From Epithemia pelagica (lineage: Eukaryota; Protista; Bacillariophyta): a stretch of DNA of 64,000 bases. The stretch lies in the NCBI GenBank assembly GCA_946965045.2, contig OX337234.1, forward strand, positions 496,001 through 560,000, in the 5' to 3' direction. Shown piece by piece: positions 37,079-57,274 of this stretch (positions are counted from its first letter, which is position 1; each line of letters starts with the position of its first letter). A program made the translations under genes and the position numbers. A model generated the notes under the pieces. It worked only from the letters and a program-made list of their open reading frames with translations. It searched no databases and was not told the DNA's origin.

Positions 37079-37383
37079 GTCGTCGCTCTTTCCCGTTGCA
37101 GACCAAACAAAAGGAACAGGCGCCATTCCTCGATGCGGTACGGTAATGTCTGATCGAGAGAGAAGAGGGGAAGAGTGTCATCGTCGTCGCCACTTTGAAA
37201 GGTTCCGAACGCGCCCCGAGAAGTTCAGAAAGACATAGCAGCGGGGTCACAATTTCGCTGTCGCTGTTGCCCGTCCGTCCGTCATCGTTCATGTTTTGAT
37301 TTTTGTGTGAATGAATACGGTCGACAAGCAGACCTGTGTTGCAAAGTCTAAAACGTAGTACAGACAGACTACCAAACAAATTA

Positions 37384-37945
37384 CTCCCTCCTGAAAGAAA
37401 ATAGTGCACGATTTTTTTTTTGGTTATTTTAGTCGCGTTAAAAACTCTCGTAGGCTCTGGTACAAACCTACAGGAGGACGGCTGGCTCATTCGGAGTCGA
37501 ACTCCACCCTGATTTCGTAGATGAACATATGCGCGAGTCTACACTATTATAGGAAAAGTACAACTTTTGTGTGCGACGAGTGAGCAGAACCATGGCCAAA
37601 GGTGCCGTCGTTGACCATGGAATTCAGCATGGAAATGGCACGAATCTTGTCAGTTGCACGCATATTCCTACTCTTTGATGCCCTGGGGGGCCGCCCTGAA
37701 GAGGACGTGTTCATAGGCGCCATAAAAGTCTCAACCGGTGGGCACTGAAAAGCAAAGCTCGAAATGGCGCCTTTTGAACGGTCATATCTCATCCCCTTGC
37801 AAGAATCGAACATATAAGTAATACACCAATATAGAGCTAATGAGTAGAGCTTTCTAGGGAAAAAAATTTTAGGAAAAAAGGACGTTTGCTCGTTGAGATA
37901 TCGTTTTTTTTCTATAATCGTGCACTATTTTCTTTCAGGAGGGAG
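37384..37945. mobile_element. Tc1/mariner (Stowaway-like) MITE, 562 bp
   Basis: Perfect 30-bp TIRs CTCCCTCCTGAAAGAAAATAGTGCACGATT; TA TSD at 37382-37383 and 37946-37947. Confidence 0.9.
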
Positions 37946-38103
37946 TACGTCCTATCTTAGATTGTGAGACTATCTATCCAAACCACAAAGATCGATCTCA
38001 TCGATCTTTGACCCTTTTAGTCTTGTCGACCTGTCGGTTGAATCCATTGAAGATCCCGTCACCATTGTCGACCCTTTTCATTCTGCCGTTGACCACTCTC
38101 ATC

Positions 38104-39327
38104 TCATGTTCCCGATGTGAACTCAAAGATGATCTTGCGGAAGATGTTGGAGTCAGCCGTCTTGCACATGTCTCTCAGACTCTTGTTCTCTCCGGCGTTG
38201 TCACACCTTGTTTTCTTGACTTCCGTTTTGTCGTCTTTCAGGTCTCGCATCAACGACATGACTTCATGCGGTGCATCCGACTTGGCTTTAAGGAGTCTAC
38301 TCCATGTCCTTCCCATGCAGTCGTCCACGATGCATAACCACACCTTGGCTCCTCCCAAGGATCTGTGCTCGGCTACTGTCGACGAGTCAATGAACAAACG
38401 TTCGCCGCAGATCTCACTCTGTGCCTTCGTGGTCTTCTTGACTGCCTTCTGCTGCATGTTGCTCATTTGACATTCTTCACATGCCTCGAGAGTCCCAGTC
38501 AGCTTAATTCCATGCTTCTTCGCTGTTACCTCCATCGAATCCTTGCTAGCTTGGCCCACAATCCGATGGAATCTGTTAATGTCGACGCATTCATTTGGTT
38601 TTGGTTTCTTCTTTGCTTGTTGCTTCTTCACTTCATTTGACCATGTAACTTTTCTTGTAGGCTTCTCTTGGCCCATCTCTTCAATTTCATCTTCCGAGTC
38701 TTCGTCATCTGCATCTTCATCTGTTACGCAGTTGACGTTCTTGGTTGGTTGAGGTGCATCTTTCACACATGCCACCTCCCCCTCCGATGGTTCCGACATC
38801 CTTGGAACCAAATCGACACCAACCAAAACGCCATCCTTTGTTCTGATGACTCGATCGAACGATAACGTCGCCCCGTCCTTGGTTAGCGTGATCGTTACCC
38901 CATTATTTGTTATTTGCCAGCCACTCTCCAGAGCTTTTGTCAGGCTAAATAACGGTTTTGGCTGACGCGGTGAAAGCTTGTTTGGCAAATTCATCATGTT
39001 GCGACGAAGATGTTCCATCAGCCTTCCTTGTGACGGCTTGGATAGATAGTCTCCCGTCATTTCGTTAGTTGGCTTGCACTCTGGCTGCATTAATCCCTTG
39101 CTTACTTGATCTGTAACAAAGAAATGCCTCATGTCCACATGACGAGTCCTTTTTCCGGTGCTCGCTCTTCCATTTTTGATCCATTTGAGGGTACTTTTGT
39201 TGTCCTGTTGTAATCGACACAGTGCAACGTTGCATCCTTGCTTTTCGAGAAATTTTCTCATCCATAAAATGTGCGACATTGCGTCGTCCACTGCTAATCG
39301 CTTCTTCGATGCGCCTGTGCGTTGCAT
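38104..39327 (-). mobile_element. Degenerate Ty1/copia pol fragments: RNase H followed by GAG-pre-integrase/integrase
   Basis: QDNKS..KRTRHVDMRHFFVTD..PTNEMTGDYLSKP (RNase H); HRIVGQAS..CEEC, GERLFIDS, IVDD, RCDNAGEN (integrase); no LTRs seen. Confidence 0.85.
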
Positions 39328-39469
39328 GAAATGTTGGAACGTGCTGTTTCCTAGCTACGTTTGCACAGGTTCTAGCTCAAACTGTTAGGTTCCCTCACTA
39401 GTGTGAGACTATTGCCCTATCTAGCGCATAGATTGTTCTTTCATGCAAAGTATGAGCCCATCGTTAACA

Positions 39470-39603
39470 CGTCGCTCATGTCGTCGACTTCATTGAACGC
39501 GCTCGGCAAACCCTGGTCCCAGTTCGTTGATCCGCTCCAGCATGTCGACATGGGCGGGCCGGAAGCGGGAGGTGTCGTAGTAGTCGCGAAAGGTCAGCTT
39601 CAT
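39470..39603 (-). pseudogene. 5' fragment of the bacterial gene downstream of the NicX-like gene (possibly acyl-CoA dehydrogenase-like)
   Basis: ATG overlaps the upstream stop (ATGA); MKLTFRDYYDTSRFRPAHVDMLERINELGPGFAER; homology boundary approximate. Confidence 0.4.
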
Positions 39604-41839
39604 GCCAGGTCCCCCTGAAGAACGCCATTGATGACAACCGGCGTGCCGTCGAGCGTGATGGTGCAGCCGCGCATGGGCAGGTCGAAATGGCCGAGCGTGA
39701 AACGGCCGGCATACTGGTTGGAGCCGGTGGACCACAGGAAATTGCCGGCAAAGGCGCGAAACTCGGTGCCTTGCACATCGCGCTTGTCATACAGCGCCAT
39801 GCTCTCCCAGCGGGCATGCGGATTCATGCCCCAGCCCACATGGGACAGGCCGTAGGCCACCGGGTCATCCCAGGCCGCCAGGTATTCGCGAAACAGTTCG
39901 GCGTCGACATTGTCGCCGGTTATCGCGCTGACAAAATCGTTCTCGACGACAAATCCGATCGTGTTCTGCAGGTAGGTCTTGAAGGTCAGGTTCATGTCGC
40001 CCGGCGCCATGACGATCTGCCCGTTGATGGTATTCTCGCCCGGAAAGCACAGGCACAGCCCGCCGGGCCAGTGAGCAACGCCGCCCTTGGCAGTGGTGAA
40101 GCCGGGCGTACCGCCACAAGGCGCGTCGCGCACGTCGATCACCAGGTCCGTGCCGGCTGCACTGGTCACCCGTATTTCGGATGCAGCCTTCAGCATGTCG
40201 ATGCCGAGCTGCACCTTGGGGCCGAGTTCGCCCTGCGGTTCCGTGCGCTCGAGGATTTCCGGATGCTCGTTGCAGATCACGAAGAGCCGCGCGCCGGCCT
40301 CCTCGATTTCCGGCCACTCCTCGGCGTGCAGCAGGCCCTCAACGGTGACGTCGACCACCACCTCGACCCGTTTCAGCGCTTCCACCACGTGGCGGATGCC
40401 GGCGATGGCGTTGGAGGCACCGGTGGACTTGACCGGCACCGGGGCGGTCTGCGGCGGGGTCTGCAGCACAATGGTCGAGTAGACGGCGCCCAGTTCATGG
40501 AGCGCCAGGGCACACAGCTGCTGCAACACGGGCCGGGACTGGCTTTCCGCCACGATCGCCACCTGCGTGCCGGCGCCGATGCCGTTCAGCGCCAATGCGC
40601 GCTTGGCATCTCCTCCGTCCGGCTCACTCCTTAGTTCACTTCCTTGCACCTACTCGTATGGCATTGGTCACAAAAACACGAAGAGAGAATGGGCGCGCAT
40701 CTGTACGTATAGTACTGACTACGTACAATTTACTGATAGGGGAACTCCGACCCACAGGAGCAAAACGGCCGCTTGGGAAGCGTAACCATTCTTTCAAATC
40801 GACGCACGCTCAGTAGCTGTCGGTTACCAAGCATGCTCTTGCTGACCGTAGATTCTTCGCCCGAGTACCGTTCTAGCCCCCGCAAGCACGGGTTGGCACG
40901 CAGGGCGAACCGCTGCAAAATACCATTTGCCAAAATCCTCACATGCCACTGCGAGAATTTTGCCAAAGCCTTCACATGTCCACGGTTTCCGAAATCCATC
41001 AGCCAACTCGTAAACGACGAACAAGCGACATGAAGTCATCTTATCCTTATCCAGGGAGGGAGGGTGGGAAAAAACTAAAACTCAGAGCAATACAAACTCA
41101 ATAGATGCTGGACCTGCAGGGAAGAGCACCTTCTCGAATAGATCAATCTGAAGACAGTGTGACCAAGACGATTGTCCCAATCCGTGGTTCAGAACTCTTG
41201 GTGAATTCTCACACACGTACTCGGATCTTTCTTCAATCGTCTGAATCTTGTAGTGTAGGTGAAGGTCTGTGAACTAAGTGACTGACACCGTCCGTTGTCG
41301 CCACCGGATTAGCTTGAGCACATGTAGGCATCTCCTCCGTCCGGCTCACTCCTTAGTTCACTTCCTTGCACCTACTCGTATGGCATTGGTCACAAAAACA
41401 CGAAGAGAGAATGGGCGCGCATCTGTACGTATAGTACTGACTACGTACAATTTACTGATAGGGGAACTCCGACCCACAGGAGCAAAACGGCCGCTTGGGA
41501 AGCGTAACCATTCTTTCAAATCGACGCACGCTCAGTAGCTGTCGGTTACCAAGCATGCTCTTGCTGACCGTAGATTCTTCGCCCGAGTACCGTTCTAGCC
41601 CCCGCAAGCACGGGTTGGCACGCAGGGCGAACCGCTGCAAAATACCATTTGCCAAAATCCTCACATGCCACTGCGAGAATTTTGCCAAAGCCTTCACATG
41701 TCCACGGTTTCCGAAATCCATCAGCCAACTCGTAAACGACGAACAAGCGACATGAAGTCATCTTATCCTTATCCCCCACCTTGCCTCATCTGCCGTATTT
41801 CGATAGCAAAGACGTTCTGTCAAATCGTCTTTGAGAAAA

Positions 41840-43558
41840 TTACAATTCTTCCGAATATTGCAACAAGGTTCGTAGCGCTGCAACAACGTCGGTGTATACC
41901 TCTAGCATTTCAGATTCCGCGAATCTGTTACCAGCGTGATCCTGTTTTCTCCATCGGTTGTTCAGAACCACAACATCTTTTGGGATCCGTTGGTTTCTGG
42001 CTTGCGTTGTGGACCCTCGTCTGAGCGATCGTCTTACACTAAAAGATGCTCCCGATTCCGTCAGATCTGGGACCAGAGATGAATGGGCAATCTGCATCAC
42101 ATACAAACTCTTGTGCCATAGGATGTCCAGCTCTCTTATGCTTGCGGCTTGATCACTTCGGGGTCTCAGTCGAATTAACGGCCCCTCTTCCACACCAATC
42201 AACGAGTATAAATTGAGTAGCCTTGTCATCCAAACGGCATTCTTGATGCCTGACTTGGTCTCTGCCGCTAACGGAATTTTGTGGCGTCTAAAACCAGTCA
42301 TGTTCTTGAATCTGCCTTGCAATGCCAACACCACATGCGGTTTCTTTGGGTGCTTCAAACCCAAGTTCGTGTACAGCTTGGATTCACCCAACCTGATATG
42401 TCCCAACTCCTCCCCTCGTAGCGCCGAGGAGAAGCCCAACATAAGTGCCGCACCCATCACGACCGTCTCAAACTTCGACAATGAGTATCCCACCGTCATC
42501 TCTTCTTCCCGAGCCCATGCCTTCTCGTAGAAACCTTGTAGGGCCAACAACAATTCAATGGATACCGCGGCATCTTGCAGTTTGACATCACCCATCCGTT
42601 CATGGCTGCCAATCATAAATTTCTTGAACCACATCGAATTGGTTGAACTGGTGGTTATATGTGTGGATCTCTTTCCGTCTGACATGATGGCTCCATCCGT
42701 ACCTTTAGGAGTGGTATGAATAAAATTGCTAATTCCAGAGCGAATCCCTCGCATAGTATCCCACTGGATAGTCTTCGAGTTTCTTCCGTGATCCATGGAG
42801 CGCTGAAGAGACACCATTGCAGGCACCATGCCCTGCACATCCTCCACCGGAAATGGTCCCCTGGGAGTGTCAGGACAAGGGTTTTCGATTCGTAGATCTT
42901 TCAGGATCTTCATCACTCTAATCACCTCTAACAGGTTTCCCTTTACCGTACTGGAACGCCTCGCCCAGAACGCATCCAAGTTGGCCCGGGTGATACAAAG
43001 CTGCGCCCATTTGTCTTCTCGAGACTCGTATACCGGATCTCTCTTGTAAATATTCCGAAAATGACATAGAGTACATTGGAACGTGGTAAGAAGATGGTCA
43101 CCTGCTCTTGCGCAAGTGTACCAGTCGTCCATATCCTTACGTTCCTTTTCCGTTGCTTCCCAGCCTTCTGTTTCCTCCACCCACTCTCCGTTTTCGTTAA
43201 GTTCCATCTTCCTCGGCTGTAAGTCACGAGGAAACGGATCGGGCTTCGCTGTCACCTCGTAACAGTGAGGGTGGTACGCCGAACGGCACGGTTCCCAATG
43301 TCCACGCGCGTGCCCATAGTTGGCACAGATGATGCCCCGCGAATGGGATAGATTGCCTGTGCAACGTGCGCACGTAATGGCCTTGGTCTCGAAAAAATGG
43401 CTCGAACTTAACTCGCCAAGGCACTCTGTGTAGAAGAGGGAAAATAAAAGCGAGAGTGAGAGGCTCAAACTCCGACTCACGAGGCCACCATTGCTCGCCG
43501 AACGGAAGAACACAGATAACATCAGATATTTTGAAAAGCATCTTTCTCCACTTTCCAC
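41840..43558 (-). CDS. Tyrosine recombinase of the retroelement (true start uncertain)
   Basis: ALRGEE (Arg I), FKN, RSLRRGSTTQA, NRWRK, EVYTD; N-terminal Cys/His cluster; overlaps pol. Confidence 0.8.
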   Translation of the reverse strand: MESGERCFSKYLMLSVFFRSASNGGLVSRSLSLSLSLLFSLFYTECLGELSSSHFFETKAITCARCTGNLSHSRGIICANYGHARGHWEPCRSAYHPHCYEVTAKPDPFPRDLQPRKMELNENGEWVEETEGWEATEKERKDMDDWYTCARAGDHLLTTFQCTLCHFRNIYKRDPVYESREDKWAQLCITRANLDAFWARRSSTVKGNLLEVIRVMKILKDLRIENPCPDTPRGPFPVEDVQGMVPAMVSLQRSMDHGRNSKTIQWDTMRGIRSGISNFIHTTPKGTDGAIMSDGKRSTHITTSSTNSMWFKKFMIGSHERMGDVKLQDAAVSIELLLALQGFYEKAWAREEEMTVGYSLSKFETVVMGAALMLGFSSALRGEELGHIRLGESKLYTNLGLKHPKKPHVVLALQGRFKNMTGFRRHKIPLAAETKSGIKNAVWMTRLLNLYSLIGVEEGPLIRLRPRSDQAASIRELDILWHKSLYVMQIAHSSLVPDLTESGASFSVRRSLRRGSTTQARNQRIPKDVVVLNNRWRKQDHAGNRFAESEMLEVYTDVVAALRTLLQYSEEL

Positions 43559-46500
43559 TCATCAACGAGGGAATCAACATGACGTGCACATTCCATGGAC
43601 GGATATGCCACGCTTCGCTCATCATGTATATGGCGACATCGGCTAGACAGGGAGGGGGCTCCCAGATGAAGATTCCATCAGTATCCTGAGGAGCAGTGAA
43701 CCAATCTTGCGGTTCCATTCTCAGTGCTTGATTGAAACGGTCACCCATGATGCGCCTGAGCAGTGTCGATGTTCCTTGAGGCTGTCTTTCACCTGCCGAT
43801 AGATGTAACGGCACATAATCCAACATGCTCTGTCCCCTCAGCACGCCACTGGTGAGGTCGGATCGGGACAGTCCGTCACTGCCCTGTGCTATCATCCGCT
43901 TGCCCGCCACCCAGATTACGTGTATGAAGGCGTTGCCCTTCATAAGGATTTTATGAAGGCGAAACATCAGATGCAACACCTCAGGGGATCTCGCCGATCC
44001 TCGATAGAACGCCGCTTCGGCATGAATATTATCTGTGAAGATAAAATACTCTGTTTCAGCGTTGACTCGCCCTTGGCGGTCAAGTTCCTCGATCTTCATG
44101 ACGATGTTTGCTAATTCTCTGAAATTGGAAGAGGATCCCACCATCGCCGACGCCTCCCAGGCCCCAAAATCTACTTCAATTTCTTTGTCGCCTGGAGTCC
44201 ATCCCGACATTCCGAATCCTGCTCCAGAGGCATCGCCAAAGTAGTAACGAGCTTTGGCGACAGCTTTGTCCGGTCTAAGAAATCGTTCGGGAGGTTCTGT
44301 TGCTGAAGTGAGCGATTCCATCGCTTCAATATCAAAGATCATTCGATCGACCAACTGAACGCGTGCTGGGGCGTCTTTGTAACTGCCACTATATCGCAAA
44401 TCCGACGCATGGTTATTCACCTTCCATCCGTCATCATCGCGATCCGGCCGCCAGATGTTGATCGTTGCATACACTCCATTCAGATACAAGAGCAACGTTG
44501 GATACGCTCGACCCACGTGGTTGATGAAGCCGGCAACCTCCTCCAGTACTTTTCGTCGCACTGTACCTTTTGGAGACGCGTTCCCGACTTCGTCGATTTC
44601 GCTTCGCAGTCTTCTTATTTCGCTCTGGGTTTTTTCCCACTTTTCTTGTGTGACCGAAATGAAAGGCCGGTCGGGGGCCGTCCCGCACACTACTCCAGCC
44701 CAGGCTCCGGGACGTTGAGTTTGCTCCCGTCTTTTTCGCGCCGCGTCTTGGACGCCATAGAAAGAAGCGGTTTTCGCAATAACCGAACTTATACGCCAGG
44801 CATCATTCGACGTCGGTCCCGTTCCCCGTAGATCGTCTACGTAATCGTGGGCATCCGCTGCTAAAGCTCCGTTTTGCCTTCTCTTCGCGATCCAAGGTTC
44901 ACCCGGGCGGTATTCGACAGTGCCAGGTAAGTTGATTACCACTCGGTACCATCTAAACACGTTCGCTCGCTTTTTCCGATCGCCTAACATGAGCCGTTTC
45001 AAGCGACGAGTTTGCTGGACAGTCGTGAAGGGTGAAGGACTCTGACCCATAGCACACCTCGTCCATCCTTCGATCCATAACTCGCCGTTCTCCTTCCTAC
45101 CATAGATAGGCGTAAAATCCATGGCGCTAAATTCTTGTAACTCCGGATGGATCCAGAAGTTTAAGAACATTTCCCCGTAGTCGTTGTCTACGCACCAGTA
45201 GCCGGTGTCGAGAGTACGAACTAAAACTTCTGCGTCCGGTAACGGGAACCACGGAGCGTACAAGCAGTCATTAAGACCACTCTTGGTTCCATCGTATACC
45301 ATCCGCACGTCGTCTTCACCCTTTGGGACCGCAAAATAATTCATTGTGGCTTTCCAGTTGCCGTCCTCTCCGACATACCGTTTTGCGCGCACATCATCTA
45401 TCTTTTCCGCAATTTGCTTTATAGTGTTGTCATCACCAAGGCCACCTTGGCGAACGATTTGTTGTTTTGGCATGCCAGTCCAACAAGGCGGGACGCCAAT
45501 CGCCAGATCTCGCATGTACTCGCTTGGCCACCGCCAAAAGAATACACTCGACCCTGCGGGCCACGCCCAAAAAGTGGCCTCACAAGCATGTCGACACGCT
45601 TCTTTGCCTCGCTGCTCTATGAGCTTCCACCAGTTTGGTTCTTCGGCCTTCAGTTGCCGATTGTTCTGCCGCCACCAAGTCAGCCATGACCGAACCACAT
45701 TGTGTCTCCATCTTGATAGCATCGCTTCTCGTACTAGATTGAACGCTCGACGGTGCCGATCTGACAAACTATCTTGGTCTAACAGGAAACGGATTCGATC
45801 ATCCCACAAATCAGTGGGTACGGCCGCCTTGTCATGTTTGACTGCTTTTTCGGAGGCAGTGGTTGTCAAAGCCAGCTTGATGTAGCCCGACATGCGCTCC
45901 TCTTCCTCGATTTTCGACTCTTCACATTCCGATGAAAGGAGTCCGTTAAGACTTTGGGACACTTCTTCGCTGTCTTTGAGAATATGAATCCCTTTTGGTG
46001 TATCCGCCGGTAATTTGACGTCGTTCGCGGTGTCCGATAGCGTTTGCATCAGCCAAGCTCGCAAACACATCCCTAAGCATGACACGACCTTGATTGGCTT
46101 GGTGCATGCTATGACGACGGCTTTGAGTGTGGCGTCATTCCAACTTTGCACTACCGACACCGGCAAATCAATACACGAAGACAACTCTTTGAGAGTAAGT
46201 TGTCTCATCACGCGGACATTCTGTCCATACACTGTTGGTAAGACGAGTCGCTTCTTTTGAAACATAGCTACATCTTTCCATGGTAGCAGATCCTTGTTTG
46301 GATCCAACAAATCGTCTTCCAGACTCGATCTCACTCGTTTCCCAGTGACAGTGCGATCCACGAGATTTATCAGATGGTTTGGAGCCCCAATAATGAATCT
46401 TGCATCGAATACAGCGGAAGCATCATTGGGTTTACTTCCGTGGTGGCTCGATTTTGCGAACCAGTGAGAGCGGCCCCGCCAATCCGTCACACCTCCTGTT

Positions 46501-46976
46501 TCGGCATGAGTGAGACCCTGGGAAAGCGTCCACCATCCTTCCGGTGGCCTTCCCCGCAAACCCCGATCCGACAGAACCAGTTGAGTCCTTCCAAACCACA
46601 GAGGATGAGATGCTTTGGGCGGACGACACGTGCCTTCAAAAACGACTACGTCAACTGAGTCCTCATAATACGGAGTGTAGTCTTCCATGCTGCAAGGTGA
46701 CTCCGGATCAATCCAGGTCACCTTTGTTCCCGACGCGACCAAGTGGGTGCAGCAATTTCTCAAGCGTTTCGACGTGACCAACCAATTAATTCTGCATCCC
46801 ATCAAGTTTTCAGGCAAGAATAGCCAACTCGAAAGACCCGTAGAAACAATACCCATAGAGAACGGTGCTTCTTCGATAGGTACCTTGCGACTGATCCATG
46901 CTGAACATGTTTCCAACTTTTCCCGTTTTTCTCGGCCGAACCTTTTGGGCTCAACACTTCTCTCCCTCTTTCGCAT
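43224..46976 (-). CDS. Pol: reverse transcriptase + RNase H, with N-terminal extension
   Basis: NYFAVPKG..VRMVYDG, DYGEMFLNF, MGQSPSP, YVDDLR (RT); FGDASGAGFG, SSNFRELAN, FTDN, HVIWVAG..QGSDGLSR (RNase H). Confidence 0.9.
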   Translation of the reverse strand: MRKRERSVEPKRFGREKREKLETCSAWISRKVPIEEAPFSMGIVSTGLSSWLFLPENLMGCRINWLVTSKRLRNCCTHLVASGTKVTWIDPESPCSMEDYTPYYEDSVDVVVFEGTCRPPKASHPLWFGRTQLVLSDRGLRGRPPEGWWTLSQGLTHAETGGVTDWRGRSHWFAKSSHHGSKPNDASAVFDARFIIGAPNHLINLVDRTVTGKRVRSSLEDDLLDPNKDLLPWKDVAMFQKKRLVLPTVYGQNVRVMRQLTLKELSSCIDLPVSVVQSWNDATLKAVVIACTKPIKVVSCLGMCLRAWLMQTLSDTANDVKLPADTPKGIHILKDSEEVSQSLNGLLSSECEESKIEEEERMSGYIKLALTTTASEKAVKHDKAAVPTDLWDDRIRFLLDQDSLSDRHRRAFNLVREAMLSRWRHNVVRSWLTWWRQNNRQLKAEEPNWWKLIEQRGKEACRHACEATFWAWPAGSSVFFWRWPSEYMRDLAIGVPPCWTGMPKQQIVRQGGLGDDNTIKQIAEKIDDVRAKRYVGEDGNWKATMNYFAVPKGEDDVRMVYDGTKSGLNDCLYAPWFPLPDAEVLVRTLDTGYWCVDNDYGEMFLNFWIHPELQEFSAMDFTPIYGRKENGELWIEGWTRCAMGQSPSPFTTVQQTRRLKRLMLGDRKKRANVFRWYRVVINLPGTVEYRPGEPWIAKRRQNGALAADAHDYVDDLRGTGPTSNDAWRISSVIAKTASFYGVQDAARKRREQTQRPGAWAGVVCGTAPDRPFISVTQEKWEKTQSEIRRLRSEIDEVGNASPKGTVRRKVLEEVAGFINHVGRAYPTLLLYLNGVYATINIWRPDRDDDGWKVNNHASDLRYSGSYKDAPARVQLVDRMIFDIEAMESLTSATEPPERFLRPDKAVAKARYYFGDASGAGFGMSGWTPGDKEIEVDFGAWEASAMVGSSSNFRELANIVMKIEELDRQGRVNAETEYFIFTDNIHAEAAFYRGSARSPEVLHLMFRLHKILMKGNAFIHVIWVAGKRMIAQGSDGLSRSDLTSGVLRGQSMLDYVPLHLSAGERQPQGTSTLLRRIMGDRFNQALRMEPQDWFTAPQDTDGIFIWEPPPCLADVAIYMMSEAWHIRPWNVHVMLIPSLMSGKWRKMLFKISDVICVLPFGEQWWPRESEFEPLTLAFIFPLLHRVPWRVKFEPFFRDQGHYVRTLHRQSIPFAGHHLCQLWARAWTLGTVPFGVPPSLLRGDSEARSVSS

Positions 46977-47030
46977 GGCTGAAATTTCTTGTTCATCGAT
47001 ATCGTAAGAGGTCTTTTCTTCATTTCCGTC

Positions 47031-49583
47031 TCACGATGGTGATTCGGCCCCTTCAGGTTTTGCTTTTCCCTTCTTGGATGGGAGTCTTGACTGCATATTT
47101 TTTATTTGACTTTCCAGCGCATCTAACTTGCGTTTTGCTTGACCCGCCTCAGTCACCGCCTTTTGTACGTCTTTTATCAGCGGATCGACATCGTCGTGGA
47201 AGCTCACTACATCTAACAAGAAGTGAGTTAGCATTGGTCCGACTTTCGGATGGTTCTTGAATTCATGATCTAAGAACTCGCGCTGCAGCCTGTTTGCTTG
47301 TAACACAGCCCACAGAAGATCATGTGCACGTTCAGGACTCGTCGCTTGTTTTATTGTGATTTCGCTGCACACCCTACGTGGCTGGTTTATCACTTCGAAA
47401 ACGATCCGGACAATGTTCTGAACCAAATCCCACCGACGGACCTCGCTCAGGTTCGTGTCAGAGCCATACTCCTCCACCTGGTCTTTCATATAGATCAGGA
47501 GAGTATCAAGGAAGTGTTTGGCGTCTGTCAACAAAGCGTGAGCTACTGACTTGGCTCCTTGGGACATTTCGGAAGTCCGAATCTCTTTCAGGACGGCCGA
47601 ATGTTTGTCATTCAGCAATTTCCGAATTTCACTGGCCGCTCCCGAGTCACGGGCACCGGATCCCTTGAACCGTTGATATGTATCGAGTTTGCACAATTTG
47701 CGTAGGTTTGTGCGAGCCTGGTCTGGTGTTCCTGCCATGACTGTAGGAGCCATGAGTTGGAACGAGTACAATGCCTTTTGATCACTAGGTCTTTCCATCG
47801 ACGACCTGCTTCCTTTGTATTGCACCTCAATGTTATCTGTATAACTTTGAGATACCGTCGTGGCCATTTCAATGAATGACATTGCGTCAACAAACTTTAA
47901 CACTTCTCCTGAAACGTTGTTGGAGATGACAAACGCCTTTACCTGAGCGGGGGAGCTAAACTGAACTCCCTCAATCTCCACAGCTTGCATCTCCGATCTT
48001 GCTTCTAGATCCGTTATGCGTATCTGCTGAGTTTTCTCTTGTTCTTCCATCTTGCTCAGCAGACGTTTCATTTCGACTATTTCCTGAGCGTCAACTCCCG
48101 AACCTGCCAAGTGAGATGTACTAGGTCGTCCTTGTTGAAATACCGAGTGCAAAGTGTCGGTCAAGTACCGAATATGATTCTCTAACTCGACACGTCCACC
48201 TCCCTGGAAGTAATCATTAGCATCAATGATAGTGTTCTCCACCTTTTTCAACTCGTGCCAGATCAAGTTCTTGACTTCCTCAGGTAGAAGCTTGAGCATC
48301 TTGCGGTCCTGCTCAAAGTCGTCGGATTTTCGTTTGGCATCGTCCAATTCGGTGGTTAGAGCCTGGATCTTCTGGTGCAAGTCCATCATTTCGATGCGCC
48401 AATCCTTTGACTCCTCAGAGTGGTTGTCTGGCTGTTGACTCGAGTCTTGCAGTTCTGACAAAGCTTGCCACACTGAAACCGTACCTGCCCCAGCAGGGGG
48501 CGCTCCCAATAGGCCACTCATTACGTTTACTTTGTTCACCAGAGTATTCAACAGCTTGTTTTGCTCGAGCTGTCGAGCGCGAAGTGTGACAAGTTGATTC
48601 GACGAGGCTTGAGCGACTTGCCCTAAGAGCGTCGTATTATGAACCAAGATCTCTCTCACGTTTGTGGTGTCAGCGGAAACCGGCTGCAAATCGAGGGGTT
48701 CCATCGGCGAGGGTAATTCCACGTCTTCCAACCGCAGCCCTTTCGCCGGAGTATGAGCGACGTGAACTGCCTTGTTCTTGAGAGCAGCCATGGTCGCTAA
48801 CTCCAAATCATCATCTTCGGCGACGGACCATGAATCCGCTTCGATCCTCGCATCCACTTCGCCAATGGCTTCCAGGGCCGCTCCAATGTTTTTCTTCGAG
48901 GGCTCAAAATCGGTCTGAGTCTCACTTTTAATCAAAGAAAACAAAGATGTCCAGACCAACACAGGTTGAATCTTAGCCGACAACAACTCTTCGACCTTGG
49001 ATAAGTCAAGGGAAGCAGCGTCCAAATAAGGATCTTGGAACGCTTGCGAAGGAGCATCTTCTTTTCCTTGCTGGGCCTTGCTCATGGGGGCGTTAATGAA
49101 CAGGACCTTGGACAATCCTTTATTCTTGAGAGAGTCTAGGAAAGAAGATCCTTTCTTGTGGTGTGATTTTGTTTTGCAATAGATCTTAAGGAGAGTACAA
49201 AATTTTCCCGACGATCCTACCGTGCTGCCGCACAACTCATGCTCATTCACATCAACGCAACGCACAGACACAAGATTGTTAGAAATAGGGTGCTCACCAT
49301 GAAGTTGAGTGTTCTCCGGCTTTGAAGGGAACCCCCCAGGAAAACGATCCGAACCAAAAGTCTCTGCGATCGACGCGACTGCTCCAGGTTTGCGTCCAGC
49401 TGGCTTGGTGTCTTCATCCATCGGCGTTCCAGATTCCGAGAGATTCTTCCCGGAAACACCCCGAGTTTTCAAGTACCAAGCCTCGCTTTCCCGATCAGCT
49501 TTGGCCCAAGCCGTGGCCAGTCGTTCTTGCGAAGAGAGAGGCGGCCCGCCGCCCTGAGTGTTCGCGTCTTCACGTTCAGTCAA
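47031..49583 (-). CDS. Gag-like ORF1 of the retroelement
   Basis: 850-aa ORF in first position; CGSTVGSSGKFC..C..KSH cluster and coiled-coil segments; assigned mainly by position. Confidence 0.7.
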   Translation of the reverse strand: MTEREDANTQGGGPPLSSQERLATAWAKADRESEAWYLKTRGVSGKNLSESGTPMDEDTKPAGRKPGAVASIAETFGSDRFPGGFPSKPENTQLHGEHPISNNLVSVRCVDVNEHELCGSTVGSSGKFCTLLKIYCKTKSHHKKGSSFLDSLKNKGLSKVLFINAPMSKAQQGKEDAPSQAFQDPYLDAASLDLSKVEELLSAKIQPVLVWTSLFSLIKSETQTDFEPSKKNIGAALEAIGEVDARIEADSWSVAEDDDLELATMAALKNKAVHVAHTPAKGLRLEDVELPSPMEPLDLQPVSADTTNVREILVHNTTLLGQVAQASSNQLVTLRARQLEQNKLLNTLVNKVNVMSGLLGAPPAGAGTVSVWQALSELQDSSQQPDNHSEESKDWRIEMMDLHQKIQALTTELDDAKRKSDDFEQDRKMLKLLPEEVKNLIWHELKKVENTIIDANDYFQGGGRVELENHIRYLTDTLHSVFQQGRPSTSHLAGSGVDAQEIVEMKRLLSKMEEQEKTQQIRITDLEARSEMQAVEIEGVQFSSPAQVKAFVISNNVSGEVLKFVDAMSFIEMATTVSQSYTDNIEVQYKGSRSSMERPSDQKALYSFQLMAPTVMAGTPDQARTNLRKLCKLDTYQRFKGSGARDSGAASEIRKLLNDKHSAVLKEIRTSEMSQGAKSVAHALLTDAKHFLDTLLIYMKDQVEEYGSDTNLSEVRRWDLVQNIVRIVFEVINQPRRVCSEITIKQATSPERAHDLLWAVLQANRLQREFLDHEFKNHPKVGPMLTHFLLDVVSFHDDVDPLIKDVQKAVTEAGQAKRKLDALESQIKNMQSRLPSKKGKAKPEGAESPS

Positions 49584-50553
49584 GCCAGCATACTACCCGA
49601 CGTCCGAAGCACGAGAACTGGTGGAACTCCTGCCCGCAGCGACACTCCCCGCACGATCACGGGAAAAGAAGAGCGGAGGAGGAGGAGGTGCAAGTGCACC
49701 TCCCCCGGGAGAAGCCACGGGCGTCGCGCTAGAGTCCAATCCGCCACGATCGACACCAAACACCGTACCAACTCCTTCTTGAAAATCCCCCCCATGTCCG
49801 ACAAAACCGGGGCGAGGCCCGACAAAGTCGACACAGGGACCCGCAACGTAGACGTTCCAACTCCCACACCGAGGCCCGACGAAAGAGTCAACCCGTCCTC
49901 CGAGGGAGGACGCGAAGACGCAGCGGGAGGGCGAGGACCCAGAGACACGCGCTCGCGAGGAGCAGACGAAAAACGCGACGAAAAGCCAGACGACGACATG
50001 GGAGCGAGGCAAGGAACGACTACAAAAAACTAAAACTCAGAGCAATACAAACTCAATAGATGCTGGACCTGCAGGGAAGAGCACCTTCTCGAATAGATCA
50101 ATCTGAAGACAGTGTGACCAAGACGATTGTCCCAATCCGTGGTTCAGAACTCTTGGTGAATTCTCACACACGTACTCGGATCTTTCTTCAATCGTCTGAA
50201 TCTTGTAGTGTAGGTGAAGGTCTGTGAACTAAGTGACTGACACCGTCCGTTGTCGCCACCGGATTAGCTTGAGCACATGTAGAAACTGGCGATCCATTTT
50301 CCCTCGGGGATTTCCTGAAGCAAGGTTATCTCCAAAAAACTTTACTACACGGTTTAGTAAAGCAGCATGATGCAGATTGGGCAATGGATCGTCAACTCGG
50401 GCAGGGGACAAAGTCTGCAGGGACGCAACAGGCGGTAGAGGTCGCCCGGGCAGGGGCATGCCACGCAAAGCCATTCCATTGCAGGCCTTCGCAACCCGCT
50501 TGCGGGCGGCCAATTTTGCTTGACGCAGTGACGGTAGGTGGCAAATTGAAGCG

Positions 50554-51294
50554 ATGACCACGCCGGAACTGACCTCACAAGACCTGTTGCTGTTTGATGA
50601 AACGCTTCCCTTTGATGCGGATGGCCCGGCAACGTTCCGCAGCGAATGCCCGCCGGACAAGAAGGTCAAGGTCGAGGATCTGTTCAAGTTTTCACGCGGC
50701 CGAGGCGACCTGCAGGTTTCCTTTGTTTTCGGCTGCCTGGCGCTGTTTTTCCTGGCGTTTTTCTGGAGCCAGACCGGCTGGGAAGACCGCAAGCTTCCGG
50801 ACAATTTTGGCAGCTACATCGCCTATCAGTTCGGACTGGTCGACATCGAGGGGCGTGTGACGCGGCTTGGCCGCATCCTCAAGCAGTCATGGATCGCGCC
50901 GCTTCTTTGCCTCGCCGTTTTTGTACCTTCAGCGCTGTGGAACCTGCAATCGTCCTGGAAGGAACATCGCTGGCGCAAGCGTTTCCTGCTGCCGACCAGC
51001 GCCTATTTCGAACTGACCAAATATGCCGCGGCGCTGGAGTTCGTCGCCTATTTCATCGGCTACACATTGCTTGTGCCGGTTCTTGGCTACCTCGTTTCAA
51101 CGCTGCTGCTGGGCACCTACCTGACCTGGCGCCTGGGCTATCGCAGCCGCGCGTGGCTGCTGCGCGGCCTGGTTGCCAGTTTTGCGGTCGTCATCGTGTT
51201 CCGCACCTTCCTGCAGATCAAGACCCCGGTCAGCATCTGGCTCTACGATCAGCTGCCCGCGGCGCTGCGCGCTTTCATGTTGACGTATTTCTGA
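50554..51294 (+). CDS. tctB: Bacterial tripartite tricarboxylate transporter small subunit (TctB-like)
   Basis: Multi-TM protein ending LVPVLGYLVSTLLLG..WRLGYR..VVIVFRTFLQIKTP, directly upstream of tctA; frame intact. Confidence 0.75.
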   Translation: MTTPELTSQDLLLFDETLPFDADGPATFRSECPPDKKVKVEDLFKFSRGRGDLQVSFVFGCLALFFLAFFWSQTGWEDRKLPDNFGSYIAYQFGLVDIEGRVTRLGRILKQSWIAPLLCLAVFVPSALWNLQSSWKEHRWRKRFLLPTSAYFELTKYAAALEFVAYFIGYTLLVPVLGYLVSTLLLGTYLTWRLGYRSRAWLLRGLVASFAVVIVFRTFLQIKTPVSIWLYDQLPAALRAFMLTYF

Positions 51295-51304
51295 GGGGGA
51301 AGGC

Positions 51305-52801
51305 GTGGAGGCATTTGTAACCGGACTGGCAAGCTTGATGGACCCGGCGGTGCTGGTGGCAATCCTGATCGGCTCCGTCGGCGGGCTCATCATCGGCGCC
51401 GTGCCCGGCATCGGGCCGGCCATCGCCATTGCCATCCTGCTGCCGGCAACGGTGTTTCTCGACGATCTTGTCAGCCTGGTGCTGCTGCTTGGCGTCTATG
51501 GCTCATCCATGTATGGCGGCGCGATCCCGGCCATCCTGATCAACACGCCCGGCACGCCGGTCAACGCGCTGACCACCTATGACGGTTATGCCATGACCCG
51601 GCGGGGGGAGGCGTCGCGCGCCCTGTCCCTGGCCTATTCGGCCTCGTTCTTCGGCGGATTCTTCTCGATTTCCATGGCGCTGATCGCGCTGTTCGTTTTC
51701 GGCCCCTACCTGCGTGACCTGGGCGCCCTGTTCGGCCAGCGCGACATCCTGATGGCGGCGATCCTCGGCGGGGTGCTGTTGATCGCGGCCCACCGCCAGA
51801 CCATGGGGATCGCCGCCATGCTGTTCGGATTCGGTTTCCTGATCGCCATCATCGGCAAGCAGTCCTCCCGCAAGGTGGATCGCTACACCTTCGACATCGA
51901 GTATCTTTACGCCGGCTTCAACCTGATCGTCGTGATCGTTGGCATCCTTGCACTCAGCCAGGCGCTCTTCCTGATGATCGGCAAGGATGACGACCCGCCC
52001 GAGGCACGCATCACCGGCGGGCTGTTGAGCGGATTCCGGGAGCTGGCCAGCAAGCGACTGATCGCCGTTCTGTCCGCCGCCTACGGAACGATCATGGGCA
52101 TCATTCCGGGTGTCGGAGAGTTCGTGGCCCAGTTCTTCAGCTATTCCACCGCGCGGTCACTGTCGAAGAATCCGGCCCGTTTCGGCCATGGTTCACCCGA
52201 GGGGCTGGTGGCGTCCGAGACCGCCAACAACGCGGTACCGTCCGCGGCCATGATCCCGCTGCTTGCACTGGGGGTGCCCGGCGAGGCGCTCACCGCCATG
52301 ATGATGGTGGTCTTCTTCGATGCCGGCATCAAGCCCGGGCCGGATGTGTTTGAAAACAATCCGGACTTCCTGTTCAGCCTGTTCACCGCAATGCTGATCA
52401 TCAACGTCCTGGTGCTGCTGACACTGCTGGTATCGACAAAGTATATTGCCCGCATGATCTACATACCCAACCGCATCCTGGGCGCCTTCATCATGATCTT
52501 GTCCTTTGTCGGGGTCTATTCGATCCGCAACAGCCTGACCGACTGTATTTTCGCGGTGCTGTTCGGGTTCATCGGCCTGGTGCTGCGGCGCCTCAACTGG
52601 CCGCTGGTGCCGATCGTCTAGGGGCTTGTGCTCGGATCCATTATCGTCGAACGTCTGACGGCCGGGGCAGGACAGATCAAATCCGCGGTCGATTTTGTCA
52701 ATCGGCCGGTTTCCGGAACGCTTTTTGTGGTGATCCTGTTGGTCACGGGATACATCATCTGGTCGTCGGTCAGGAACCGGCGCACGGAATATCAACAATG
52801 A
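51305..52801 (+). pseudogene. tctA: Bacterial TctA permease with premature stop
   Basis: GLIIGAVPGIGP..GGAIPAILINTPGTP..ASETANNA..IPLLALGVPG; TAG at 52619-52621 interrupts PLVPIV*GLVLG and the frame continues to TGA at 52799-52801. Confidence 0.9.
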
Positions 52802-52976
52802 CCAAACGATCATGGGAGGAACCAATGAAAAAACTTGCAATGGCGGCCGCGCTGGCCGCCACCGTGGCCGTCTCCGGCGCCATGCCGGCGGCCGCTGAAT
52901 ACCCCGAATCGCCGGTCCAGTTCGTGGTGCCGTTCCCGCCGGGGGATTTCGAGGACATCCTGACCCGCATGATCGC

Positions 52977-55900
52977 TAGGGTCTTCAAACTTAGGTAAAT
53001 GAAATTTTTGCTTAACTTGCTATGAAATTTAGGCTAAGTTTAGGTTTTGAAGTTTAGGTAGTTTAGGTGGCTATGGAATACGGCTATGGAGTCTCATTTT
53101 TTTCAATACATAGAAATCGAACCAAACAAGTCATCATCACAATGATCCACAACTTGTTCATTCGTTGCTTTATGGACAGTGGATCTTACCTTCATTAAAT
53201 ACCGTAAGTTCAGCCTAGCTCGCAGACAGACTTCCGCCTTGTCTTGCCCAAGATTACTGCGCAACTTACTCCAAACGTTGTTTTTGAGTGGCTTGGCAAC
53301 TCGCTCGACAGAGATAGAGCCAGTCGAACGAACCGAAAGAAGTGGTTCAATCACAAGATCGTACAACTTACTTGGAGGAGCAATGCTAAAAAACTCCAGC
53401 CTCCCTTGGTGGCCACCTGTGGTACTCACCCACTGACTCACCATTTGGATCGTGAGTTCGCGCTCTTCCTGGAATCGATCAGAAGGTGGACGTGGGCTCT
53501 CTGTGGGGAAGAGATCAATCCACTTCCCTGTGTGACCAAGATAGGACCTGAACTCCTGATCCACAATCAACCTGATGTCCCTTGTGTCCGGAGCTTCGAC
53601 CCTTCCCCACACAGTGGGACGCATATTGGGTGGCTCGACAGGTCCAGCATTCGGTGGTGGGGGTGGAGGTGGTTCCTGTGCAGGAATCACAAAGAACTCA
53701 ATTGCATCCTGCATGCAACGAGCAATTGATGGGTGAATGATAGGTCGCTTGGGGATTCTGGACCTGAAGGGATCCACGAGAAAAGCCCAGATTTGGTACT
53801 TGTCTAAGAGACCAACTTTCCGTCCAGGTGGTTCCGATCCATCATAGTTGAACCGATTGTCGCAGAACTCAACAATGGAGTTCCGTGCCCCACGGAGATT
53901 GAAGATTGCATCAATGGATCTGCTGCCACTTGCTGTTCCTGAACCCAATACACCATTCAACTCGTTGCGCATGGCAACAATCACGGGGTAGTACGCGGAG
54001 ATTGGAAAGTCATCGTCCGACACAAGCTTTGTTGCATGTTCAATCACAGCATAAATCTTGGCAACAACTTCCACCTTAGCCCATAGATCACGTGTAACTA
54101 GTCGAAGGGTTGCATCAATCTTTTCCTTACGCCTCTGTGTTCGCGAGTTGTAGTATTGCTCAAACATGGGATGGTGCCCGTTGCACCATTCATAAAAAGG
54201 CTTTTGGTTCAGAACCGACTCCAAGGTCATACCAACCTTGTTGAACCTTGTCTCAGAGTAGTTGGAGACATTGCCACAGGTTGCTGGTAGATCGCCAGTT
54301 CGGACTAGCTCATGTCGAATCCCATCTACATTGTCTGTGGTTGAAAACTCCATCAGCATGGCAATGTCTGACAGGAGTGAATCAATACATGGGACCTTGG
54401 CCACATCCTTTGCCAACAGGTCAATACAATGAGCACAGTCACGATTGCTCAGTATGTTGGGCTCTTTGGGGTTGTTGGACTTGTAGATTGCACATGCCTC
54501 TTTCACAACTTTCGTGGCAGCGTTGTCTGTTGCAACACAGCACAAGGGAGAATTGTACTCACGTCGCGTCTTCACCATGAAATCAACCATGTCTTGCGTC
54601 TCAGCCTCTGTTGCATGGGCGAGGTTGCGAAGACGAGAGGCCTTTGCAAATAAAGTAACACTACCTTTCGCAATGGTGGAGAGAATGGTGCTGGTACCGT
54701 TGCAGGTGACACCATCAGCTGCAATGGTCATGCCTCCTGGAATCTTTTGCATCATGGTGTTCAGCTCTAGTTGACACTGTTTGTCAATCACCATGACGTA
54801 GCGCTTGTAGATTGTGTCTGGGTGGTGGGGCACAAACTTCATAATACCCTTACCAAACCGTGTGACGAGTTCGTCTTGGACGAACGGGTCCAACAGACGT
54901 TGCATGGGCTCGAAGCGTGCGAGGGTTGTTTCGACAGACTTCATGATGAGACGATTGGCCATCTGTTCTGTCAGAACAGTACCAAAACTCTGTATGGACG
55001 ACTGCTGGTGTTTCTTGCGACCTGCTTTGTCTCCTGGTTTGGACCTGGCCTTGTCTCGTAAACTTGTTGACAGCGAGGATACAGAACTTGATGCACCTGA
55101 AGACTCTGATGCCATCACCCTCTCTTGGCTGAGTGGACCACCAACAATCAAACCCAATTGTTTCTTGGCACGCTTACTAGCTTGAGTTTGGCCATCACAG
55201 AGTTGGCGAATTTCAGTAGGAGCGCTCTTGCATTTCTGAATGATGTGATCAGATGCAACACTTGCATTGAAAGTCTTCCAATTTTTGTACATCTTGCAAT
55301 GGATGCACACAATCTTCAAGTATCCTTCTCGATCCGGGTCAGGGGAAATCTCAAACTGCTCTCGGATGTATTGGTTGGCTTTCTTTTTGGGTGGCTTTCG
55401 CTTATTTTGCGACAACGTCGTTGAGTCGTTGGTCGTAGTATCGTCTTCATCGTTGGCGTCACTTCGTCCCGTAGCCACTTCGAATGGTTCATCCTGCTCC
55501 TCGTCGCCTTCCGTCGTCGTCGTCGAAACCATGGCCGTCGTCGTGCCTTCTTGTTGTTGCTGTTCCTCGTCTTGTCCTTGTCGTTGTTGTGTTGCAGCTG
55601 TCAACGGTGACAGATCTTGGAACGTCACAACAGTAGTATTCGGCTGCTCGTCAGCAGTACTTTCGTTCTCCATTGCAACTTCTGCTGATCCTGTCTCCAA
55701 CAAATGTGATCGGAGTTTGTTTGATTGCTGAATCGTTTGTTGTTGTTCATCGTTCATGTGTCATCATTGTTGTTGTTCTTGCAAAGATCCCAAAGATATC
55801 AGCCTGTCAAGATCTCATGCCAACTGCCAACATCAACGGTTGGATACCTACGGTACCTATGCCTAGTTAACAAAAGGGCCTACCTAAACTTCGGTGGACA

Positions 55901-55983
55901 TGGCGTTGAGTCTTGTAAGTTACGAAAACTTAGGCCCCTAAATTTAGGCGGAGAAACTTCGGCTAAGAAACTTGAAGACCCTA
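52977..55983 (-). mobile_element. Complete hAT DNA transposon, 3007 bp
   Basis: 12-bp perfect TIRs TAGGGTCTTCAA; 8-bp TSD ATGATCGC (52969-52976, 55984-55991); subterminal TTAGG/CCTAA repeats. Confidence 0.95.
53103..55757 (-). CDS. hAT transposase (BED finger, DUF659-like core), intact 884-aa ORF
   Basis: CIHC..DHIIQKC, IAADG, NRDCAHCIDLLAKD, SETRFN, SVERV. Confidence 0.9.
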   Translation of the reverse strand: MNDEQQQTIQQSNKLRSHLLETGSAEVAMENESTADEQPNTTVVTFQDLSPLTAATQQRQGQDEEQQQQEGTTTAMVSTTTTEGDEEQDEPFEVATGRSDANDEDDTTTNDSTTLSQNKRKPPKKKANQYIREQFEISPDPDREGYLKIVCIHCKMYKNWKTFNASVASDHIIQKCKSAPTEIRQLCDGQTQASKRAKKQLGLIVGGPLSQERVMASESSGASSSVSSLSTSLRDKARSKPGDKAGRKKHQQSSIQSFGTVLTEQMANRLIMKSVETTLARFEPMQRLLDPFVQDELVTRFGKGIMKFVPHHPDTIYKRYVMVIDKQCQLELNTMMQKIPGGMTIAADGVTCNGTSTILSTIAKGSVTLFAKASRLRNLAHATEAETQDMVDFMVKTRREYNSPLCCVATDNAATKVVKEACAIYKSNNPKEPNILSNRDCAHCIDLLAKDVAKVPCIDSLLSDIAMLMEFSTTDNVDGIRHELVRTGDLPATCGNVSNYSETRFNKVGMTLESVLNQKPFYEWCNGHHPMFEQYYNSRTQRRKEKIDATLRLVTRDLWAKVEVVAKIYAVIEHATKLVSDDDFPISAYYPVIVAMRNELNGVLGSGTASGSRSIDAIFNLRGARNSIVEFCDNRFNYDGSEPPGRKVGLLDKYQIWAFLVDPFRSRIPKRPIIHPSIARCMQDAIEFFVIPAQEPPPPPPPNAGPVEPPNMRPTVWGRVEAPDTRDIRLIVDQEFRSYLGHTGKWIDLFPTESPRPPSDRFQEERELTIQMVSQWVSTTGGHQGRLEFFSIAPPSKLYDLVIEPLLSVRSTGSISVERVAKPLKNNVWSKLRSNLGQDKAEVCLRARLNLRYLMKVRSTVHKATNEQVVDHCDDDLFGSISMY

Positions 55984-56836
55984 ATGATCGCGGCCAAGAT
56001 GCAGGAAATGACCGGCGTTTCGGCCTCGGTGGTCAACCGCCCGGGCGGCGGCGATGGACCGTTCCCGGGCGCCCTTGAGGTGCTGGACGGCCCCACCGAC
56101 GGTTCGGTTGTGGGTTCCTTTGTCATCGATGTGCCGATCGTCGGCCCGTTGATTGATATCGGCATGGAAAACGACAGTTTTACGCCGGTCGGCATTTTCC
56201 TGACCTACCCGTTCGTGCTCGCGGCCAAGGGTGACGCACCTTACAAGAACATGGCAGAACTCGCCGCCCACGCCCAGGACAATGACGTGGTTCTTGGTCA
56301 TTTCGGAGCCGGACTGACCCCGACACGCGCGACGTTCGTGGCGGCCAAGCTCATGGACTTCGAGTTTGCCGACGATTCGGCCTTTGACCTTCTGGACTGC
56401 AACTCGCTGTCCTCCGGTGATGCCGACGTCATTAACACGACCCTGGCGCTGATCGAACCGTGCCTCGGCGACGTGACAATCCTCGCCAATATCGGTTCGG
56501 AGCCGATCGGCAAGCTGCCCGGCGTGGAAACCCTGTCCTCGCAATCCGGCGCCAGCGATCTGGAGCTGTGGAACGGTCTCTTCGTGAAGAAGGGCACACC
56601 GCAGGAGGTGATCGACAAGCTCGCCGAAATCTCGGCCGCCACCATGGCCAGTGAGGAAGCACAGGAACTCATGAAGGCAACCGGCGCCCGGGTCTATTGG
56701 CAGGGCACGGAGGAATCCATTGCCCGCATCGAGGCCGACCGGGTCAAGAGCGCCGAAATGGACAAGATCATCGAAGAGTGATCGCCAACCCGCGGTGACC
56801 GCCCGGCGCGGTCACCGCTTCGTTCCGGGAAAATTC

Positions 56837-57049
56837 ATGCAGCGCATCAGACTTGGCATCTTGCAAACCAACCACGACAAGTCGGTGGAAGTCGGGGACG
56901 CCTTTCCCGACGATGCCCACCGGTTTCGCGACATGTTCGATGCACAGGAAGACCGCTTCCAGTATCGCATTTACATGACGATTGGCGGTGAGGTGCCGCA
57001 GGACTTGGATGAGCAGGATGCGTTCATGATCACCGGTAGCCCGCTGAGC
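56837..57049 (+). pseudogene. Bacterial class I glutamine amidotransferase-like gene, 5' fragment
   Basis: MQRIRLGILQTNHD..YMTIGGEVPQDLDEQDAFMITGSP, truncated after ITGS. Confidence 0.75.
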
Positions 57050-57274
57050 CGCCTTGCCACGTGACAATCCCGTGACACTGGTCCTGACACGGTTGCGGGC
57101 CGAGTCGTTCGGATTGGAGCACACTGCTTCGTCAGTTTTCCGGGGGCGTTGACATGCCGTCGAAGTCACTCCAGTTTGCCGAAGCTTTGCGCTGCAACCT
57201 TGCCGCCGTTCCCAGCAGCGAGCCCGCCGCTTTTGAACACGCCAGCAAGGTCATTTTCAGCCGACAGGTGTTGC

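Follow-up and report, generated by a model that had tools for sequence, protein, structure and literature searches.

A putative tyrosine-recombinase retrotransposon inserted base-exactly in a bacterial gene carried by a diatom chromosome

The window analysed here is a 64,000-nucleotide stretch of the diatom Epithemia pelagica, positions 496001-560000 of the 3.86-Mb contig OX337234.1 (C7 below) in a eukaryotic assembly of 60.5 Mb and 23 contigs. Within it, a bacterial gene encoding a NicX-like protein is split in two by a complete split-direct-repeat retrotransposon of 9.7 kb, at window positions 40605-50282, with the minus strand as its sense strand. On the plus strand, the left bacterial flank ...CGCTT gives way to element sequence GGCATC, and the element ends in ...CATGTAG before the right flank AAACTGG. 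Excision of the element with one G kept makes the bacterial gene whole again. The insertion is base-exact, without target-site duplication (TSD) or loss, and one base at its site is common to the target and to the element's own internal B1/A2 repeat junction.

The upstream part of the target gene (50283-50365, minus strand) holds the first 14 codons, the last of them completed by the shared base, together with a ribosome-binding site and an operator-like motif (50340-50365) that is conserved upstream of bacterial homologues and retained here. Translation of the minus strand across 50282-50323 gives LLQEIPEGKWIASF, from a TTG start with GGAGAT before it. The downstream part (39600-40604, minus strand) supplies the next 335 codons, beginning KRALALNG; it is open and stops where its homologues stop. 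At 80 bacterial loci the encoded protein is 70-87% identical in amino acids to the NicX-like product, the best matches coming from Planktomarina and Thalassobium, and Pfam model PF26233 (NicX) matches the same gene in a second assembly, described below. Ten homologues, from Rhodobacterales and others, have the N-terminus MLQEIPEGKWVASF followed at the insertion point by RRVLKLNG; they are contiguous, colinear and gap-free across that point, with the same spacing as the rejoined gene. Because the spacing is identical, the insertion added exactly one element unit and removed nothing, and the target had exactly one base where each element end carries G. An initial annotation, made from the sequence alone, had claimed that excision rejoins the gene with its ribosome-binding site and that both junctions share a single G without a TSD, and had proposed a homologue search of the rejoined gene; both claims are upheld by the comparison.

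Read in the sense direction, the element has the layout A1-[ORF1-3]-B1A2-16 nt-B2, where ORF1-3 are three open reading frames (ORFs), and all features lie on the minus strand. A1, the 5' terminal repeat of 259 nt (50024-50282), starts with the shared C (sense) at 50282 and abuts bacterial flank from 50283. ORF1 (47031-49421) has 796 aa from its first ATG and is open from 49583; ORF2, the pol frame (43224-46976), has 1250 aa; ORF3 (41840-43207) has 455 aa from its ATG and is open from 43558, overlapping ORF2. All three are open. B1, the internal copy of the 3' repeat (448 nt, 41327-41774), meets A2, the internal copy of the 5' repeat (41069-41327), with an overlap of one base, the G at 41327 on the plus strand, so that the junction, CATGTA-G-GCATC on that strand, is an image of the joined element ends. 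A pyrimidine-rich spacer of 16 nt (41053-41068; 78% and 70% identity in relatives) separates A2 from B2, the 3' terminal repeat of 448 nt (40605-41052), whose final base is the shared C (sense) at 40605. By direct comparison the two copies of A, and likewise the two copies of B, are 100% identical with 0 mismatches; the 448-nt length of B comes from direct base comparison, where the repeat tool printed 300. A repeat search of 39000-52000 found no inverted repeats.

None of the three frames matched anything in Pfam, NCBIfam or Protein Data Bank (PDB) sequence searches, even at E<=10 (the NCBIfam run took in the bacterial-side frames too), and parts of the frames, 30 pol relatives and profiles of 30 relatives gave nothing useful in Pfam or PDB sequence searches. 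Predicted structures were more informative. ORF2 divides into an N-terminal region of about 480 aa of unassigned fold, a reverse transcriptase (RT) domain with YVDD at 44832-44843, an RNase H domain with GDASG at 44223-44237, and about 200 C-terminal residues. An AlphaFold2 (AF2) model of residues 480-1250, with a predicted local distance difference test (pLDDT) score of 86.5, had as its top Foldseek matches the RTs of Moloney murine leukemia virus, foamy virus, HIV-1, cauliflower mosaic virus and Ty3, with E-values down to 4e-15 over 510-680 columns; the HIV-1 alignments, of about 650-680 columns, extend over RNase H. The Atlas clusters closest to ORF2 by sequence features and structure carry RVT_1, often RT_RNaseH and sometimes Dam, and the combination of RVT_1 with RT_RNaseH and Dam typifies DIRS-type pol proteins. 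For residues 480-1250 there are 624 homologues; among the 120 listed, none has a recorded Pfam domain, and those with a named source come from the diatoms Epithemia and Mayamaea. By its predicted fold, then, ORF2 is a retroviral-type RT with RNase H. Its C-terminal 200 aa or so form a folded extra domain in the AF2 model. The Atlas neighbours of this domain, which are leads only, carry Dam in 11-27% of members at weak scores of 0.88-0.90, and Pfam Dam has no match in it.

ORF3 has 163 homologues; among the 120 listed, none has a Pfam domain on record, and Epithemia is the only named organism. Their alignment conserves R381 (in ALRGEEL), K418, R510-S-L-R513, W536 and Y555, and an AF2 model built on it (pLDDT 80) drew only Cre, XerH, lambda Int, Tn1549 Int or Flp among its top 40-odd Foldseek matches. 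ORF3 is accordingly predicted to be a Cre-like tyrosine recombinase with the catalytic R-K-R-W-Y pattern, and no match to the DDE integrase model rve was found by Pfam in any of the three frames. These predicted folds agree with the initial annotation of a eukaryotic tyrosine-recombinase retrotransposon. ORF1 is rich in coiled coil, is called as the same 796-aa gene in the second assembly, and showed no CCHC zinc knuckle and no CxxC pattern in a motif search; it would be gag-like, as judged from its position only. Upstream of the ORF3 ATG, in the overlap with ORF2, lies a Cys/His motif (43262-43372, minus strand; CxxC ... HxxC, weakly PHD-like) that is kept in longer relatives, and the recombinase may be produced as a fusion or from an earlier start.

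The element is one of a family. Its repeats match seven other places on five contigs in a search of the assembly; for its recombinase there are at least 94 matches, which are spread over 17 contigs, form several subfamilies and mostly have open frames. Full copies at 78% (C11) and 70% (C3) identity repeat this anatomy, with the conserved spacer and a single shared C (sense) where B1 meets A2. The C3 copy lies inside a 13-nt tandem repeat, and joining flank, C and flank restores the period, so that this target is independently shown to have had one C. The copy on C2 (97% identical) lacks A2 and one of the B repeats; it has the same ends, with 2 nt of possible flank overlap. Two copies of a subfamily whose recombinase is 61% identical have the junction ...GTGC-C-TTAATG, with a flank overlap of 1 nt in one and 3 nt in the other. 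The same C (G on the plus strand) recurs in five copies, on C11, C3, C2, C10 and C6, at 61-97% similarity and with host DNA at their flanks, the outcome that the initial annotation had proposed to look for. Junction overlap is 1 bp in the 40605-50282 element and in the C11, C3 and C6 copies, and the six copies with both ends have identical terminal element bases. Among the insertions compared, no target consensus was visible beyond the C. For the C11 copy, the 5' flank is a repeat of at least 40 copies, but the similarity ends about 24 nt short of the insertion; the C2 and C11 copies each have a unique 3' flank, and no paralogous empty sites were found for them. A further element, 7 kb past the end of the window, has no DNA similarity to 40605-50282 and gave no recombinase match at E<=1e-10.

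More distant or damaged relatives vary in their junctions and surroundings. In a subfamily with a recombinase 33-35% identical (C5:823000-836500 and C13:1912500-1926000), the internal junction overlap is 5-6 nt (CCTCA or CCCTCA). Each of the two copies has CCCCA at the end of its 3' terminal repeat, which departs from the internal junction at one position, identical in both; the crossover region may here contain sequence derived from the target. Telomere-like CCCTAA repeats adjoin the C5 copy. A member of a 40%-identity subfamily (C18:2402000-2415500) has the junction ...GTA-CC-GCATCG, with a 2-nt overlap. At C4:595000-611500, a 70% relative with collapsed 3' repeats lies between two 3.6-kb direct copies of one sequence, 99.3% identical to each other and set at unequal distances from the ends of the element (158 nt and about 28 nt). 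An isolated, rearranged remnant at C2:5290869-5291314 combines a piece of A with a piece of B, which meet at one point and run in opposite orientations.

The reading that we consider very probable is that a full-length DIRS-order element from a family resident in the diatom, with split repeats of the Ngaro/PAT type, inserted into Rhodobacterales DNA already transferred to a nuclear chromosome. DIRS1-like elements have been proposed to integrate by recombination of a 3-bp junction with an identical target, without TSD (PMC3266345, PMC7192593), and the joined-junction recombination model is set out in PMC7192593 where it cites Poulter and Goodwin 2005. The present insertion fits that model with a junction of 1 bp instead of 3 bp. 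A transcript running from A1 to B2, without complete ends, would be reverse-transcribed by ORF2. The internal junction of B1 with A2 would template joining of the 3' to the 5' end, yielding a closed unit with the junction ...GATGC-C-TACATG... (sense). The ORF3 recombinase would then swap strands between the joined junction and a target sharing only the single C, leaving one copy of the shared sequence at each element end and no duplication. A circular or joined intermediate, catalysis by ORF3, and one base as all the identity required would be the terms of this model. Classical recombinases usually use 6-8 bp of shared sequence. That the diatom lineage needs one matching base (C) only, which would make this the least sequence-demanding tyrosine-recombinase integration described, is a more tentative proposal, to which we give somewhat less than an even chance. 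The "1-nt core" of the initial annotation stands as 1 nt of identity; its use as the core would be a step of the model, and identity is 2-3 nt in two copies.

Several points weigh against this interpretation. A one-base match would arise by chance at about 44% of random junctions, nearly one half, so the case is built on recurrence over six insertions, together with the two targets reconstructed, and not on this copy alone. At the junction codon the bacterial homologues have TTT or TTC, so the identity of the target base is deduced rather than read. The intermediate and the recombinase activity are steps of the model, and the extrachromosomal complementary DNA (cDNA) of DIRS-1 is mostly linear and single-stranded (PMC7192593), so that the circle remains a model. 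With Pfam blank for both enzymes, family placement rests on predicted folds. Finally, the read runs used below are probably the source data of the assembly, in which case they attest consistency rather than independence, and the second assembly may derive from the same sample.

Linear cDNA also underlies the main mechanistic rival, capture without any recombinase, in which host end joining would insert linear cDNA at 1-nt microhomologies. Microhomology of 1-3 nt is typical of such joining, and overlaps of 1, 2 and 3 nt do occur among the copies. End joining normally trims ends and targets, however, whereas the six copies with both ends start and stop at the same element bases, their content is one junction-permuted unit, and the two reconstructed targets have lost no base. 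The family has, in addition, retained an intact recombinase with its catalytic residues. We regard capture by end joining as unlikely.

An assembly chimera, in which a contaminant bacterial contig was misjoined to diatom sequence and the junctions are artefacts, deserves attention because diatom cultures carry Rhodobacterales, because GC content jumps along the window from about 0.47 to about 0.61, and because the read runs are probably not independent of the assembly. Read unitigs from a 31-mer graph were compared at the left junction in three runs of one organism. Unitigs of 2716 nt from X16 and X18 (one mismatch) cover 37919-40634, and one of 1456 nt from X17 covers 39178-40633; they span host repeat DNA, the bacterial gene and then 30 nt of the element, ending there because that is the reach of a 31-mer graph into a repeat. 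They have full single-copy depth: 127.1 and 136.3, compared with values of 126.6 and 142.6 for the host DNA on their left. A second public assembly (ENA ERZ21939226, a 539-kb contig) has the same locus, with the 40-nt words at both junctions exact. Excision restores the gene to the base, the element ends are those of the other copies, and a host hAT transposon splits the neighbouring bacterial tctC. A chimera is therefore very improbable, and the statement of the initial annotation that misassembly is very unlikely is borne out at both junctions.

The second assembly also bears on the age of the insertion. It has 8 base differences in the 11.7-kb block 41536-53207, all of them in the element and none in 2.9 kb of bacterial flank; its copy of the element, on ctg1302l, has the 3' repeats collapsed to a single B plus a 26-nt deletion (versus window 40788-41535); and it carries an extra 2.1-kb DDE_1 (pogo-like) transposon, absent from the window, at 34902/34903. 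These differences identify it as another haplotype or strain sharing the insertion, which is thus older than the split between the two alleles. The insertion is nonetheless young, with 707 nt of repeat free of differences. The initial annotation had suggested, from identical repeats and open frames, that it is recent; the repeats are identical, but the presence of the insertion in an allele differing at 8 sites tempers this.

A 1-bp duplication of the target after a staggered cut, in which the C at each end would be the duplicated target base, would also place the same base on both sides of the element. Yet the flanking base is C in every copy examined, C is the single base at the internal junction of B1 with A2 in lineages 61-97% alike, and the bacterial frame requires one base at the site, not zero; this possibility too we put at very little.

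The chromosomal setting of the bacterial DNA is that of a diatom nuclear chromosome. The locus lies 0.54 Mb into its contig and is flanked on either side by genes and transposons of the host. The left 35 kb of the window encodes PPR, HMG-box, patatin-like and hAT proteins, and a 407-aa ORF adjoining the bacterial block has an N-terminus common to more than 100 long ORFs across the genome, which marks it as host repeat DNA. Bacterial similarity is limited to four blocks of about 4.6 kb in total (39498-40605, 50282-50360, 50617-52976 and 55978-57056); within tctC it stops at 52976 and restarts at 55978, on either side of the host hAT. The tctB and tctA genes are still open reading frames with bacterial signals retained. 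Here nicX and tctBAC stand back to back, whereas in the bacterial loci fetched they are on the same strand, 3-4 kb apart; either the fragment was rearranged or the donor is unsampled, and the bacterial block may consist of two fragments of one donor that were joined or inverted on integration, in the region 50361-50616. The bacterial DNA is a laterally transferred Rhodobacterales fragment, with a nicX-like gene beside tctBAC. Left of it, at 37305-37948, a high-copy host repeat shows as unitig depth 15-90 times the flanking level, together with many loose ends. The bacterial gene is matched at 39532-39791 by a contig of an unrelated run (X2, organism A), which differs at 4 positions over 260 nt; marine, coral and sediment metagenomes contain 5-13% of the sampled words, which places close relatives of the donor in marine samples.

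Transposition across domains, by which the element would have entered the genome of a living bacterium, draws on the split gene, tctB and tctA being still open with bacterial signals, and is the least probable of the alternatives given the position deep in a eukaryotic contig between host genes and transposons, the confinement of bacterial similarity to four short blocks, and a nicX/tctBAC arrangement unlike that of every bacterial locus fetched. The initial annotation had taken the bacterial DNA to be a real target of a eukaryotic retroelement: the gene was the target, but it sat in the diatom chromosome and not in a bacterium. Other copies were likewise found in eukaryotic DNA, rather than only in a bacterial genome, the case that would have counted against that annotation.

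A eukaryotic retroelement inside a bacterial gene is thus accounted for by prior transfer of bacterial DNA into the diatom nucleus, and the apparent cross-domain transposition disappears, the bacterial gene being already a passenger in the chromosome. Taken with the neighbouring hAT, the insertion shows the transferred DNA to be real and resident, and to be undergoing disruption by transposons of the host. Its bacterial relatives provide a natural empty-site reference and, with it, a rare base-exact view of a pre-insertion target, with no duplication, no loss and one shared base. If the one-base requirement is true, transferred bacterial DNA offers base-exact empty sites for elements whose integration was never so cleanly reconstructed. 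The element belongs to a large family of diatoms and marine metagenomes with hundreds of homologues, no Pfam domain being on record among the 240 listed; since standard domain searches miss the family, such elements are probably under-annotated in algal genomes.

Among known element classes, the arrangement A1-[ORFs]-B1A2B2 defines the Ngaro/PAT type (PMC8547959, PMC4157794), and annotations of diatom and brown-algal genomes include repeats of Ngaro type (bioRxiv 10.64898/2026.04.27.720831; PMC3145265). The features of the DIRS order found here are an RT/RNase H fold with YVDD and DAS motifs, a predicted tyrosine recombinase instead of a DDE integrase, and no TSD; the Ngaro feature is the split direct repeats, the internal copies of which lie downstream of the recombinase. 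A long terminal repeat (LTR) retrotransposon was considered and rejected: two LTRs, a DDE integrase and a TSD of 4-6 bp are all absent from the element. The DIRS1-like class, typified by Dictyostelium DIRS-1, shares with it the RT/RNase H, the recombinase and an internal region mirroring the joined ends. In DIRS1-like elements, however, the terminal repeats are inverted and the junction is 3 bp long (usually NTT), in contrast to the direct repeats and 1-bp junction here, and this class was rejected as well, on the lack of inverted repeats in 39000-52000 and the 1-bp overlap.

Resemblance is closer to the split-repeat groups. Ngaro elements, such as those of Cafeteria burkhardae and zebrafish, have the same order of gag-like, RT/RNase H and recombinase genes and no DDE integrase, and solo or collapsed repeat forms also occur among them (PMC8547959), as among the relatives of this element. 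The pol of the present element differs in its extra N-terminal region of about 480 aa and in its C-terminal domain of about 200 aa, whose nearest Atlas neighbours include some with Dam; absence of a methyltransferase is part of the definition of Ngaro, and this domain has weak Dam-carrying neighbours and no Pfam Dam match. A further difference from Ngaro is that its proteins are not recognised by Pfam, so the class is set by anatomy and predicted folds. PAT-like elements (Pat1, Toc3, kangaroo) likewise have split direct repeats, with algal hosts for Toc3 and kangaroo (PMC4157794), and a methyltransferase-like domain after RNase H, for which the element has a candidate only; Pat1 has a zinc finger in Gag, whereas ORF1 is without CCHC or CxxC. 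On the criteria compared, the element belongs to the DIRS order, split-repeat (Ngaro/PAT) type. This element type is itself known; the value of the case lies in a base-exact insertion of a recombinase-encoding retrotransposon and in a large family invisible to standard domain models.

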